A stretch of 64,000 bases of DNA from Orbicella franksi (GCA_964199315.1 OZ116703.1:23684001-23748000); one strand, 5' to 3'; counted from the stretch's first letter, positions 17,883-23,457 are shown. A program made the numbers and translations. The notes: generated from the letters alone by a model not told the origin.

Positions 17883-20014
17883 GAATGGCTGACTGTTAGG
17901 ATCGAGAAACGCCGGTCAACGACCCATTTGGCAAATCGCTCATATTTTGCCCAAGGATACCCTTCGGTGACCTAATTCTAAAAATCATATTATAAGGTTC
18001 CAGCGAATTTTTATTTTTCAGAAATTCGCGAAAATTTGAAAGCGCGATCAAAGTGCGGTTTTTGGTGTAATAAAATGACCGAAATAAGGTGCGAGGACGA
18101 AGCGCTGCTTAAGTCTTAAAATAAATTAAATTGACTTCAAACTTCACACAAATGTGGAACAACCACTCTAATTTATTCCTCGTTTTAAACTAATCTCAGA
18201 TGTGTTGATATAGGGGTTTTCCAAACCATTTTAAAAACACCTATGAAGCGTGTGAAAAATAACGGCAAAATATAGGTCATGTTTAACAGCATAAAAATGC
18301 ATCTGGTACCTCACTTTCCGATTATTTTACTTTACAGCCTTAAAATATCATTATTAAACATGTACCATGCCAAGTTTCATGCTCGAACTCGCAGTATTTC
18401 CCTTTGAGAAAAACGAAAATCTATGTCAATGTGTTGGGCGCAAATAACACAACAATTATACAAGAACAATAGACAAATCAATTTCAAAAGCGAAAGTAAA
18501 AGGCTATCATTAATCAATCAATTCAATCAATTAAGCAATTCACTGCTATCAGTGGAAACATAATGTCCTCATAATGTCCAATACATAAAAACTGTTTTTA
18601 GACGTTTTCGATCTTTGTTTAATTTCCTGTCCGCCGTCATGTCTAGTTTGTCATCGCGTGTATTTCCTTAATGTAAACAACACTGTGAATGGTTCTCATA
18701 CCAAACGCACAGAGGTTTCCTGGAACCTCGATGTTTTCGATTCACCAAAACGCTTTAAGTTCGTTAAGACACAATAATGGGTCAACTTGGAATGCTGTTT
18801 AGCATTAAGGACGTTAAAGGACTGTAAATTAATCGAGTTGAAATATCTTGAGGCAAATCAAAATCGCGCCCTTATTCTAATTGCTAAACAGCCGATCTCC
18901 GTTCAAGTTCAAGAAGTCGAGAGGTTAATTCGGCAATGTATCACCGGTACAACAACAAAATCAAACCGAGGTCATCAAAAGTGTAAGTTTAAAAGTGTAG
19001 TGGCAAGTTCGAAATAAATTTCGCCTATATAAATTGGAAACAAGAAGTGAAACGATCTGACCCGAAACAAATAAACGAAATATTAATACGACTAATTTAA
19101 TCCGAAAATGTTGCAGAAAACATACCTAAAAGCCGTCGATTCCCCTCAATACCACTCCACATTGCCTTACAGAGACCAAGCTTTCTGCTGTAAGAATCAG
19201 GGGCCTCATGAATCTGTTTTTATTATATCGGCAACCATGCTGCGTGGCTGATATTCGAGACTCAGTAAAAGTTGTCACAGAACCGTACGAGCAGCCCAGT
19301 CACGCTTTCACTGCTTTCGCGCAAATGTTCAACATTTCGCAATTGCAAGTTTAAAGTAGTGACAGTAGATTGAAATGCGCTTTTTTAAGCTTTCCTATCC
19401 AGGAGCAATTATTTCTTGTTCTTGAATGGCTTTTAGTTGTAGCTACAGTCGGGGAGGGGGGGGGGGGTACTCCCGGAAATTTCGAATATCTGTATGCCGT
19501 GGAAGATTAAGTGGTCTCTAGCTCTTAACGCCAACACTGAAACACCCGATGATTCTCGAAGTATCACAGGGATCACTAAGCAAAATAATTTTGAGTTTAG
19601 CTCCGCTGAGTCAGATACCTGTTGGCGTGCATATTGCATTTACCGTGGACAGGTGGAAAAACAGTTAAACCGGAAAAGCCTGTTGCACATTGTAATTCAG
19701 CGTTGTCCAACACGCAATCGGTCTGGTTGTAATGCTAATCGTATTTGATAGAATCTCAAGTTTTCTTTCGACACATACTCACGTACTGGGGTGGTGACAT
19801 ACTACTAGATGGGCGTGGTCGGGAGCCACGAGTCAAGTCAGTCAACTCGCAAAGCTCAACCGAGAAGAGTGATAGTGGACCACTGGTGGAAGGACTGCAG
19901 ATTGTCTCTACGCCTTACCCTAATAGGCCTCTGTGTTATTCTAATGAACTGATGCTGTTACAATGATACTATTTAGCTTTATGAACATGGTAATGGTAAA
20001 GGTTTTCTTTTGCA
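17883..20014 (+). repeat. Left inverted arm (2,132 bp)
   Basis: Reverse complement of 21326-23457. Roughly 98-99% identical by eye, with mismatches clustered. Confidence 0.95.
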
Positions 20015-20238
20015 GTATAAAAGAATCATTAATAAGTAGTTCTTTGTGAAAAACTATTTTAAGGAAAGTAAGCTGTTTGCGAGATCTATGTTTTCAGATG
20101 TTCTAGAGTGATTAGTTTGTTAAGGCACTGTTGCGCTGCGCCTGCGCGCAGTGTCGGAAAAAGTACGTTAGATCATCTGTTTCTAAGTTGATAAAGGCAA
20201 ATTAATCGCTGCAGCGAATTTGGAAAGGGTGACGATTC

Positions 20239-20305
20239 CAACCTCGTTCCCAGAGTCTCTCATCTTACCACCCTCTCGTTCCCAAATTCGCTGGGAACGA
20301 GGTTG
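20239..20305. mobile_element. CAACCTCGTTCCCAG...CTGGGAACGAGGTTG MITE with 9-bp TSD inside the foldback spacer
   Basis: Flanks are tgacgattc (20230-20238) and agacgattc (20306-20314), 8 of 9 identical. Confidence 0.8.
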
Positions 20306-20447
20306 AGACGATTCGGCCGTTAGTTTTTCCTCTAAAGGATCTCCCTCCTCTACTCCCTCTCCCTCTCTACAAAAATTTGACGATCCTCCCCCCCCCCCCG
20401 GCAAGAGATGTTTGCTCAATACCGAAGAATTCGAACATCGACAGTTC

Positions 20448-21150
20448 CTAAGAATACTTCCGGCAAGTGCAGTTGTTAGTAAAATACTTCACAAGCGCTG
20501 AGTATGGAGCTATTCCGCGCACGAATGGGAGAGGTATATCTAATCCCATGTCTTCGCACCCGCACCGTAGCATAGGCAGTTTCAGGCTCTTTAGGCCACC
20601 CTCCATCGCCAAGGCACAGGGGTCTTGCTGGTCGTATACCAAAGGATGCTGGAGCTGAACTATTTCTACAACTTCCTTTACCTGAATAAAATTGCTCTCC
20701 TCTTCAGATGCCTGAACATGCATCTCATCAGGATCACTTTGCCGCAGAGCGTCACTTTGTGAGAGAAAAACTAGCACCTGAAAAAGACGAATATTATAAG
20801 GGTCCCGGACTCTGCGCATCTCCTGCGCCACCATTTCGGCGTCAAGCTTTCGGCCTGTCGTTTGACCAACGCGGGATTTTGCCATGAGATACGATTGCTG
20901 CTTGTCATTGACTGCCCTCAGAGCCCAACCCCCTTTTAAAGCAACAAGGACTTCTTGGTGACCTACTGTGGCTTTGAGTTAAGCGCCAACGCTTACTCCA
21001 AGCAGGGTTTGTAGCACATTTTCGCTAAGTCCATAAGGGAATGTCTCTCCAGGGACGAAGTACATTTCTCCAGTGACAAGTACCTCTCTAACGTAGACAG
21101 CCTATGAAAGACACGAATGCAGCTGCCTTGAAGGCATTAATACACCCTGT
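20448..21150 (-). pseudogene. Decayed C-terminal fragment of a zinc-finger-containing transposon protein in the foldback spacer
   Basis: Minus strand reads VY*CLQGSCIRVFHRLSTLERYLSLEKCTSSLERHSLMDLAKMCYKPCLE*, then after a frameshift LKGGWALRAVNDKQQSYLMAKSRVGQTTGRKLDAEMVAQEMRRVRD...LEGGLKSLKLPMLR...CTC. It contains a C-x4-C finger-like motif, in-frame stops and a frameshift. Confidence 0.6.
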
Positions 21151-21325
21151 CGTGCATGGTGACTATCCATGGAAACATCAGCAGACGCTTCCTCGGTCAC
21201 ACCCGTTGATACTGGCACTGATGTTAAGGTCGCAGTGTTCGTACCTCTTTACAAAATGACCTGAAGTCTCCTTCAGAGAACGAGGCTTCCAGCAGAAATA
21301 AACAAAGAGCGATGTCTGACTAAAT

Positions 21326-23457
21326 TGCAAAAGAAACCCCTGACCATTGGCATGTTCACAAAGCTAAATAGTATCACTGTAACAGCATCAGTTCATTAGA
21401 ATAACACAGAGGCCTATTAGGGTAAGGCGAAGGGACAATCTGCAGTCCTTCCACCAGTGGTTCACTATCACTCTTCTCGGTTGAGCTTTGCGAGTTGACT
21501 GACTTGACTCGTGGCTCCCGACCACGCCCATCTAGTAGTATGTCACCACCCCAGTACGTGAGTATGTGTCGAAAGAAAACTTGAGATTCTATCAAATACG
21601 ATTAGCATTACAACCAGACCGATTGCGTGTTGGACAACGCTGAATTACAATGTGCAACAGGCTTTTCCGGTTTAACTGTTTTTCCACCTGTCCACGGTAA
21701 ATGCAATATGCGCGCCAACAGGTATCTGACTCAGCGGAGCTAAACTCAAAATTATTTTGCTTAGTGATCCCTGTGATACTTCGAGAATCATCGGGTGTTT
21801 CAGTGTTGGCGTTAAGAGCTAGAGACCACTTAATCTTCCACGGCATACAGATATTCGAAATTTCCGGGAGTACCCCCCCCCCCCTCCCCGACTGTAGCTA
21901 CAACTAAAAGCCATTCAAGAACAAGAAATAATTGCTCCTGGATAGAACAGCCTTAAAAAGCGCATTTCAATCTACTGTCACTACTTTAAACTTGCAATTG
22001 CGAAATGTTGAACATTTGCGCGAAAGCAGTGAAAGCGTGACTGGGCTGCTCGTACGGTTCTGTGACAACTTTTACTGAGTCTCGAATATCAGCCACGCAG
22101 CATGGTTGCCGATATAATAAAAACAGATTCATGAGGCCCTTGATTCTTACCGTTGAAAGCTTGGCCTCTTTAAGGCAATGTGGAGTGGTATTGAGGGGAA
22201 TCGACGGCTTTTAGGTATGTTTTCTGCAACATTTTCGGATTAAATTAGTCGTATTAATATTTCGTTTATTTGTTTCGGGTCAGATCGTTTCACTTCTTGT
22301 TTCCAATTTATATAGGCGAAATTTATTTCGAACTTGCCACTACACTTTTAAACTTACACTTTTGATGACCTCGGTTTGATTTTGTTGTTGTACCGGTGAT
22401 ACATTGCCGAATTAACCTCTCGACTTCTTGAACTTGAACGGAGATCGGCTGTTTAGCAATTAGAATAAGGGCGCGATTTTGATTTGCCTCAAGATATTTC
22501 AACTCGATTAATTTACAGTCCTTTAACGTCCTTAATGCTAAACAGCATTCCAAGTTGACCCATTATTGTGTCTTAACGAACTTAAAGCGTTTTGGTGAAT
22601 CGAAAACATCGAGGTTCCAGGAAACCTCTGTGCGTTTGGTATGAGAACCATTCACAGTGTTGTTTACATTAAGGAAATACACGCGATGACAAACTAGACA
22701 TGACGGCGGACAGGAAATTAAACAAAGATCGAAAACGTCTAAAAACAGTTTTTATGTATTGGACATTATGAGGACATTATGTTTCCACTGATAGCAGTGA
22801 ATTGCTTAATTGATTGAATTGATTGATTAATGATAGCCTTTTACTTTCGCTTTTGAAATTGATTTGTCTATTGTTCTTGTATAATTGTTGTGTTATTTGC
22901 GCCCAACACATTGACATAGATTTTCGTTTTTCTCAAAGGGAAATACTGCGAGTTCGAGCATGAAACTTGGCATGGTATATGTTCAATAATGATATTTTAA
23001 GGCTGTAAAGTAAAATAATCGGAAAGTGAGGTACCAGATGCATTTTTATGCTGCTAAACATGACCTATATTTTGCCGTTATTTTTCACACGCTTCATAGG
23101 TGTTTTTAAAATGGTTTGGAAAACCCCTATATCAACATATCTGAGATTAGTTTAAAACGAGGAATAAATTAGAGTGGTTGTTCCACATTTGTGTGAAGTT
23201 TGAAGTCAATTTAATTTATTTTAAGACTTAAGCAGCGCTTCGTCCTCGCACCTTATTTCGGTCATTTTATTACACCAAAAACCGCACTTTGATCGCGCTT
23301 TCAAATTTTCGCGAATTTCTGAAAAATAAAAATTCGCTGGAACCTTATAATATGATTTTTAGAATTAGGTCACCGAAGGGTATCCTTGGGCAAAATATGA
23401 GCGATTTGCCAAATGGGTCGTTGACCGGCGTTTCTCGATCCTAACAGTCAGCCATTC
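21326..23457 (-). repeat. Right inverted arm (2,132 bp)
   Basis: Reverse complement of 17883-20014. Confidence 0.95.

Follow-up and report, generated by a model that had tools for sequence, protein, structure and literature searches.

A high-copy foldback element in a coral genome, very probably a non-autonomous Sola3 derivative

Introduction

How does a transposable element come to consist largely of two long arms that mirror each other, and to which superfamily does such an element belong? The question is raised by a 64,000-nucleotide stretch of the coral Orbicella franksi (GCA_964199315.1 OZ116703.1:23684001-23748000, which is C6:23684001-23748000 of the 497-Mb assembly), hereafter called the window. 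Within it, positions 17883-23457 are occupied by two near-identical inverted arms around a short loop, with a copy of TTAA on either side. A preliminary description of this DNA, made from the sequence alone, took the structure for a giant foldback transposon of a Sola3-like or Kolobok-like family and saw in it a possible small-RNA locus that silences its own family. Here, we present evidence that the element is very probably one copy of a non-autonomous, foldback-shaped Sola3 derivative, and that it belongs to a large family in this genome whose history can be traced back to an autonomous-looking relative.

The Sola3 group of the Sola superfamily was reportedly defined by Bao, Jurka and Kapitonov in 2009. 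To our knowledge, it is among the least studied of the cut-and-paste superfamilies, and we know of no Pfam model, solved structure or transposition assay for it.

Results

The element and its target-site duplication

An inverted-repeat search of window positions 17000-24500 returns one inverted pair only, 17878-20019 and 21321-23462, with 2,142 nt in each copy and 1,301 nt between them. The outer 5 nt of each copy (cTTAA) belong to the flank; the element proper is 5,575 bp long and has its centre of symmetry at 20670. Compared base by base, the arms (17883-20019 and 21321-23457) show 27 mismatches and no insertions or deletions, and BLAST gives an identity of 98.83% over 2,137 nt. Both ends of the element read TTAA followed by GAATGGCTGACTG, i.e. 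cTTAA followed by GAATGGCTGACTGTTAGGATCGAG on each side. The two 2,137-bp arms account for 77% of the element, very long arms being characteristic of foldback elements, and Tandem Repeats Finder reports no tandem repeats in 17883-23457. The mirror symmetry about 20670, the crisp ends and the spacer of ~1.3 kb that had been described previously are thus all recovered. The arm length given at that time, 2,132 bp, is as valid as 2,137 bp, the innermost ~5 nt of the arms being weak.

The flanking TTAA had been described as a target-site duplication (TSD), and this is what it proves to be. TTAA abuts all 32 family termini that were inspected, and since the base preceding it varies among them, TTAA is a true TSD that lies outside the inverted repeat. 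The left flank, 17400-17882, is part of a repeat for which the genome yields at least 349 candidate copies, 95-97% identical, while the right flank is repetitive over its first 73-79 bp only. In five uninterrupted paralogues of this host repeat (C11:14590797-800, C11:14561695-698, C8:5806256-259, C15:20126845-848 and C2:19992133-136), the matches to the left and right flanks overlap by exactly 4 bp, a single TTAA, which means that the element entered a copy of another repeat and duplicated the one TTAA found there. In addition, one run with raw polyA RNA reads and two further runs with contigs contain joints from position 17876 to 23456 that skip 5,579 bp, i.e. the 5,575 bp of the element plus 4. 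An empty allele, or presence-absence polymorphism, was considered as the source of these joints and rejected on account of the hundreds of copies of the flanking repeat. Since the flank is a high-copy repeat, uninterrupted paralogues are the best explanation for the joints, which are proof of the TSD and not of a polymorphism.

A family of foldback units in the coral genome

In the whole genome, the arm used as a query gives 48 matches at 90-100% identity, and the loop gives 19 full-length matches at 95-100% identity. At least 19 loci, spread over many chromosomes and with differing flanks, carry an equal arm-loop-arm unit with equal inner junctions. Ten complete copies are verified after the fetched loci are merged, and many more are partly seen. 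Subfamily B, which is 89-91% identical, is also of the foldback type, with arms of ~2 kb and a loop of ~985 bp. The terminal 28-mer, allowing at most 3 mismatches, occurs at 347 sites (179 forward and 168 reverse, with 0 for the reversed control), which corresponds to ~170 elements in the genome; paired terminus sites are 0.76-8.4 kb apart. Two copies on different chromosomes differ by merely 0.2-0.4% arm for arm, a sign of recent movement of the family.

Arms of 2.1 kb are the rule among the full-length sister copies. The earlier view that the arms are unusually long holds with respect to an autonomous relative (see below), whose 514-bp terminal inverted repeat (TIR) they exceed about 4-fold, but not within the family, where this length is normal for every full-length copy. 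The window copy is itself an ordinary genomic feature and is not special within its family.

A palindrome of this kind might be an assembly artefact, or might consist of two independent copies that were inserted head to head by chance. Chimeric long reads are known to produce long inverted repeats, and the whole 5,575-bp structure is spanned by no read or contig examined. However, the arm-loop-arm unit with identical inner junctions stands between TTAA copies at at least 19 loci with differing flanks, and arm-specific differences that are common to two copies indicate that the unit was inherited whole. Furthermore, four to five differences at the inner ends distinguish the two arm types and are fixed across the family, and a single TTAA is duplicated around the entire 5,575 bp. 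The probability that remains for either alternative is negligible, and we treat the foldback structure as a real transposable unit.

Some family members contain nested open reading frames (ORFs) of non-LTR (long terminal repeat) retrotransposons. These are a reverse-transcriptase stretch of 453 amino acids (aa) at L060:2592-3954 and a 494-aa ORF, opening with an endonuclease-like region, at L030:3552-5036. Such insertions explain some of the oversized copies of 6-8 kb.

Derivation from an autonomous-looking relative

The ten ORFs found in the arms and loop give no Pfam matches. The longest open stretch of the loop, 20451-20978 on the minus strand (176 aa), has homologues of ~300 aa in coral and anemone data that are 52-61% identical to it over its full length. 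Their N-terminal part contains a weak zf-C2H2 match, after which comes a helix-turn-helix-like region. On coral metagenome contigs encoding these homologues, we found an autonomous-looking relative of the window element. The version on contig L063 (245-9556; 9,312 bp) has TTAA on both sides, termini that begin GAGTGGCTGACTG and GAATGGCTGACTG (GAG/GAA ends), a TIR of 514 bp at 84% identity, and three same-strand ORFs of 412, 372 and 299 aa (ORF1 to ORF3). The relatives on L063, L064 and L067 start with GAGTGG and have the 514-bp TIR, and the foldback family starts with GAATGG. On L064, the 13-bp flanks of the complete element (1-13 and 9326-9338) are reverse complements of each other, which is probably an assembler artefact arising from the long TIRs.

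When the window element is read on its minus strand, its right arm and loop are collinear with L063 apart from a gap of 4.5 kb (Table 1). The left arm repeats the first 2,137 bp of this reading in inverted orientation and stands where L063 has 7812-9556. Each arm is hence composed of the ancestral TIR of ~550 bp and 1.6 kb of formerly internal sequence. The collinearity with L063 shows that an internal deletion was followed by replacement of the 3' end with the inverted 5' 2.1 kb. A 306-bp segment, 20020-20325, has no match to L062 or L063. The earlier classification of the element as a non-autonomous, TTAA-duplicating DNA transposon is supported.

The coding remnants of the window copy fit this derivation. 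The minus-strand remnant at 20457-21242 aligns to residues 19-299 of the 299-aa protein with 58% identity and is interrupted by two in-frame stops (one TAG and one TAA), while the 176-aa stretch alone is 62% identical to the ORF3 block; the 'dead zinc-finger ORF' noticed in the spacer by the preliminary description is therefore a decayed ORF3. The remnant of the ORF2 tail, corresponding to ORF2 residues 278-325, is identical at 34 of 48 positions at the protein level. The window copy encodes nothing functional. Other, more distant Sola3 families of the genome have ORF2 and ORF3 joined in a single open frame, which is 650-717 aa long (e.g. C6:10068585-10070492, C5:17102039-17103976), with some frames reaching ~1,000 aa. 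ORF1 to ORF3 are thus probably exons of one transposase gene, and the zinc-finger ORF3 is probably the C-terminal domain of the Sola3 transposase.

Assignment to Sola3

Sola3-1_HM from Hydra and CRE_08425 from C. remanei are the Sola3 representatives (RNase H group E.13) in the alignment of Majorek et al. 2014 (PMC3985635). The ORF2 protein contains three motif blocks in agreement with them. The first, DW..K.LP....E.Q.D.FGK.G.S.H, surrounds the first aspartate and is common to both representatives; the second, DNAGCYHS, stands at the second acidic site and is identical to that of the nematode CRE_08425; and the third, FS[DE].QGGK, stands at the third acidic residue as in the Sola3 representatives. 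These motifs are present in 25-30 of the 32 ORF2 homologues, and the acidic residues D112, D195/N196 and D227 are invariant. The structure predicted for ORF2 from the 32-sequence alignment (predicted local distance difference test score, pLDDT, of 77) is a compact RNase H-like fold with no insertion domain, for which the best Foldseek matches are retroviral integrase cores; a profile search against PDB sequences gave no match. It should be noted that the catalytic core is that of the family as represented by ORF2 of L063, while the window copy keeps only the last ~48 residues of ORF2 and the decayed ORF3. The TTAA target found at 32 of 32 family termini, and also at both sides of the L063 element, likewise agrees with Sola3.

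The other possibility is that the element is a non-autonomous member of Kolobok or piggyBac. Kolobok elements have a TTAA TSD and 5'-RR...YY-3' termini (PMC9587614; PMC6004289), a signature to which the TTAA and the GA...TC ends of our element conform, although the feature is not exclusive to Kolobok. The genome is also rich in piggyBac transposase frames and contains the pairs of THAP and P2RX7_C genes that are typical of Kolobok. However, the gene matched by the coding remnants of the element itself is one for a transposase with Sola3 motifs. Kolobok transposases are further distinguished by a THAP domain, an H2CH finger and a DDE core with C/DxxH, and the Kol0 lineage by the additional KolX (P2RX7_C) gene (PMC6004289, PMC9587614), whereas ORF1 and ORF2 have no THAP, PF13843 or other Pfam match at E<=1, and the RNase H core predicted for ORF2 is compact and lacks an insertion domain. 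Among the matches listed, no P2RX7_C or THAP match adjoins any ORF2-family match. As for piggyBac, coral elements derived from it have short TIRs starting with CC[C/T]T and a DDE_Tnp_1_7 (PF13843) transposase (PMC2872659), whereas the ends of our element read GAATGG and do not contain that motif. Kolobok or piggyBac membership is thereby reduced to a very slim chance, and of the two superfamilies that had been suggested at the outset, Sola3 is supported by the motif blocks of ORF2 and Kolobok is contradicted by the absence of THAP and by the compact core.

Partners from both of these superfamilies were also considered and rejected. Of the 117 PF13843 matches in the genome, none among those listed lies between family termini, and the P2RX7_C and THAP matches pair with each other and not with the ORF2 family. 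The THAP matches and the P2RX7_C matches (P2RX7_C being the ballast domain) lie ~3 kb apart at at least 10 loci (e.g. C1:33760415-33764116, C10:5840377-5843219 and C8:6976215-6979794), and this is the two-gene layout of Kolobok elements of the Kol0 lineage. Separately, an intact THAP-domain exon at L051:2463-2792 (minus strand) abuts a truncated subfamily B copy and has its stop codon in transposon-derived sequence. It was rejected as the start of a Kolobok transposase, being an unrelated neighbour amid a mosaic of unrelated repeats, and it has one other copy only in the genome, 83% identical, at C3:25769468-25769683.

Candidate sources of transposase

In the coral genome, ORF2 is best matched by a minus-strand frame at C1:14444555-14445571, which is uninterrupted for 349 aa and 88% identical. 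A perfect family terminus (C1:14450540-14450567) stands exactly 5 kb outward of it, with the same spacing as in L062 and L063. Residues 116-406 of ORF1 follow at this locus with 88% identity and no stops, and no ORF3 is present there among the matches listed. A second copy, located on C5, shows clear decay, and the genome is rich in more distant Sola3 families whose three blocks are all open. On C8, triplets of Sola3 ORF1, ORF2 and ORF3 with identical scores and stop patterns occur at ~20.88, 21.13, 21.63, 22.06, 22.51 and 23.34 Mb; their spacing of several hundred kb suggests large segmental duplications on that contig.

Concerted evolution of the arms

In the ten complete copies of subfamily A, the divergence between the two arms of one copy is 0.23-3.1% (median ~0.9%), compared to 2.8% between copies, and in 7 of the 10 the nearest relative of each arm is its own partner. 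In subfamily B, the corresponding values are 0.14-1.2% within copies and 2.95% between copies. Lower divergence within than between copies indicates that the arms are probably subject to arm-to-arm conversion. The two copies that differ from each other by 0.2-0.4% each keep 1.6-1.9% between their own arms, from which it follows that transposition itself does not homogenise the arms.

In one subfamily B copy (L057), a miniature inverted-repeat transposable element (MITE) of ~410 bp with 38-bp TIRs is mirrored in both arms, at 191-612 and 3465-3886, and its two copies are 100% identical. The arms of L057 show 0 differences over 559 bp around this MITE and 19 differences in the other 820 bp. The chance that all 19 would miss the 559-bp tract is ~(820/1379)^19, or ~5e-5; this is a conversion tract, and L057 provides a direct case.

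As for the window copy, 4-5 of the mismatches between its arms lie near the inner boundary and are the family-wide fixed differences between arm types, while ~16 are private to one arm (6 left and 10 right). Four of the private variants fall within 15 bp at 19186-19200 (opposite 22140-22154) and are changes of the right arm. This cluster looks like one complex mutational or repair event and not like independent substitutions.

Transcription and the question of silencing

The element had also been proposed to act as an endogenous hairpin-RNA locus, in which read-through transcription would give a 2-kb duplex that Dicer or PIWI pathways turn into small RNAs, with silencing of the family and perhaps an effect on the nearby gene SHMT as the result. 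With arms that are complementary at 98.8%, any transcript of the full length would fold back on itself, and contigs of six RNA libraries contain ~0.3 of the element's words. In cnidarians, multi-mapping small-RNA clusters are known to map mainly to transposons (PMC6211395). The transcript data nevertheless give such a locus no support. The depth of polyA RNA over the arms is 0-2.6x, with 62 reads matched among the 12.9 million records of one run, and 51 of the 62 are just 95-99% alike and hence derive from other copies or from the host repeat. The RNA-library contigs over the element are indistinguishable from DNA carry-over, and the flank that looks transcribed is a repeat with hundreds of copies. 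Another RNA run, X21, has 0 reads matching the element and is uninformative. Given the ~170 similar copies that are capable of forming a hairpin, no copy is marked as a 'master', and the master-locus claim finds no support in the copy number or in the polyA depth. Overall, we consider a silencing locus decidedly unlikely. The first coding exon of SHMT (15674-15967, minus strand) is ~1.9 kb from the insertion, and an influence on its promoter is pure speculation.

An RNA depth of ~6x is seen over 17650-17849 and is assigned to the host repeat family. This repeat occupies window positions 17400-17882 and 23458-23535, and its coverage can mimic transcription at this locus.

Coordinates of features

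Table 1. Features of the window element and its correspondence with the relative on L063.
Feature	Position	Strand	Basis or remark
Host repeat	17400-17882, resuming for ~75 bp past 23461		at least 349 candidate copies, 95-97% identity
Left TTAA TSD copy	17879-17882		termini; single-TTAA paralogues; joints skipping 5,579 bp
Left arm, 2,137 bp; second, inverted copy of the first 2.1 kb (5') of the element, in place of the original 3' end	17883-20019	+	inverted repeat; collinearity with L063 bypasses the left arm
Ancestral TIR part of left arm, ~550 bp	17883-18431	+	85% identity to both L063 termini
4.5-kb deletion junction, left-arm copy	~19449-19524	+	just upstream of the ORF2 remnant
ORF2 3'-end remnant (Sola3 catalytic coding block), left-arm copy	19524-19680	+	BLASTN 81% to L063 6256-6404; BLASTP 34/48 to ORF2 residues 278-325
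Junction segment, 306 bp, unmatched in L062 and L063	20020-20325		between duplicated arm and transposase remnant; poly-C run and short local hairpin
Decayed ORF3, last transposase coding block; C2H2-like zinc finger and helix-turn-helix-like region	20457-21242	-	homology to 299-aa protein
Right arm, original 5' part: terminus, 5' subterminal region, deletion junction, ORF2 tail, intergenic stretch	21321-23457	-	collinear with L063, continuing into the loop
Right TTAA TSD copy	23458-23461		termini; single-TTAA paralogues; joints
L063 245-794	element 1-549	-	86% identical
L063 961-1464	element 732-1247	-	
L063 1524-1758	element 1344-1567	-	
L063 1759-6255	missing from element		ORF1 and most of ORF2
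L063 6256-6404	element 1642-1798	-	ORF2 tail
L063 6596-6768	element 1985-2162	-	
L063 6795-7811	element 2164-3132	-	ORF3

Discussion

The collinearity with L063 shows a history in two steps. The ancestor was an autonomous element of ~9 kb with TTAA TSDs, GAG/GAA termini, TIRs of ~0.5 kb and three same-strand coding blocks. It first lost 4.5 kb, and with them the first block and the greater part of the catalytic one, after which the 3' end was replaced by an inverted copy of the element's own 5' 2.1 kb. The outcome was a unit whose two ends are identical 'left' ends and whose loop contains what is left of the C-terminal zinc-finger block. Presumably mobilised in trans by a Sola3 DDD/E transposase, this unit spread as a whole to ~170 TTAA sites, and the window copy landed inside another repeat, ~1.9 kb upstream of SHMT. 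After insertion, occasional arm-to-arm gene conversion probably keeps the arms alike, as suggested by the divergence patterns and by one conversion tract seen directly.

Several points weigh against this interpretation. The Sola3 call is a by-eye agreement of motifs with two representatives and not a scored alignment or a Repbase/Dfam match. Long TIRs with GAG...CTC ends are given as the Sola3 signature, and the ends of the foldback family are GAA and not GAG. Other assemblies derived from corals supplied the autonomous relative, at about 74-86% DNA identity. The C1 locus, with part of ORF1 and no ORF3 among the matches listed, is no more than a candidate for an active transposase source in this genome. 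The sequence does not reveal by what mechanism the inverted duplication came about. Finally, the divergence pattern of the arms could partly reflect separate master lineages instead of conversion in situ. We nevertheless regard a non-autonomous, foldback-shaped Sola3 derivative as very probable.

Compared to Sola3 elements, the family shares the TTAA TSD and a cnidarian host, and its relative has the compact DDD/E RNase H-like core with D[WY]..K.[LIV]P, FGK.G.S.H, DNAGCYHS and FS[DE].QGGK, for which there is no Pfam model, as well as TIRs of hundreds of bp ending in GAG/GAA. In contrast, the family of the window lacks the catalytic part, has 2.1-kb arms (~4 times the TIR of the relative) that include former internal sequence, has the same 5' end at both of its ends, and terminates in GAA instead of GAG. 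It resembles the foldback elements FB of Drosophila, Galileo (P superfamily), Tetris and Tm1 in that the arms make up most of the element and evolve in concert within one copy, and in that copies vary in length by internal deletion, with hairpins, cruciforms and ectopic recombination as possible consequences. Unlike in elements of the FB and Galileo type, the arm sequence here is unique and free of internal tandem repeats, the TSD is TTAA and not 7-9 bp, the superfamily is another one, and the arms can be followed back to one inverted duplication in a derivative that already carried the deletion. With non-autonomous Kolobok elements such as the T2-MITEs of Xenopus, the TTAA target and the purine-purine termini are shared, but neither the coding remnants nor the autonomous relative are of the Kolobok type, since a THAP domain, a KolX/P2RX7_C neighbour and an insertion domain of the catalytic core are all lacking. 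The CMITEs of Acropora, which are derived from piggyBac (PMC2872659), also combine a coral host, TTAA duplication and non-autonomous amplification, but the element described here lacks CC[C/T]T, is 5.6 kb long as opposed to ~100 bp, and is associated with another transposase family.

The family amounts to ~0.9 Mb of palindrome-prone DNA and is therefore relevant to the annotation of this genome. Palindrome-prone DNA can break assemblies and seed inversions. The family offers a clean and datable line of descent that leads from an autonomous element to a high-copy foldback, with the deletion first and the inverted duplication of one end afterwards. Its copies also form a natural series in which gene conversion between the arms of long inverted repeats can be measured. 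They are, moreover, direct evidence for repeated mobilisation of a Sola3 unit that has the same 5' end twice, which bears on the end requirements of the transposase.

We also put forward the idea, rather unlikely at present, that the foldback shape itself may underlie the success of this Sola3 derivative and may also expose the family to silencing. Two identical 5' ends, maintained by conversion, could suit the Sola3 transposase better as a substrate than does the natural pair of left and right ends, which would explain why there are ~170 copies as opposed to one or two decayed autonomous relatives. If this is true, the read-through hairpins of 2 kb formed collectively by these copies would feed the small interfering RNA (siRNA) and PIWI-interacting RNA (piRNA) system of the coral, directed against the whole Sola3 lineage.

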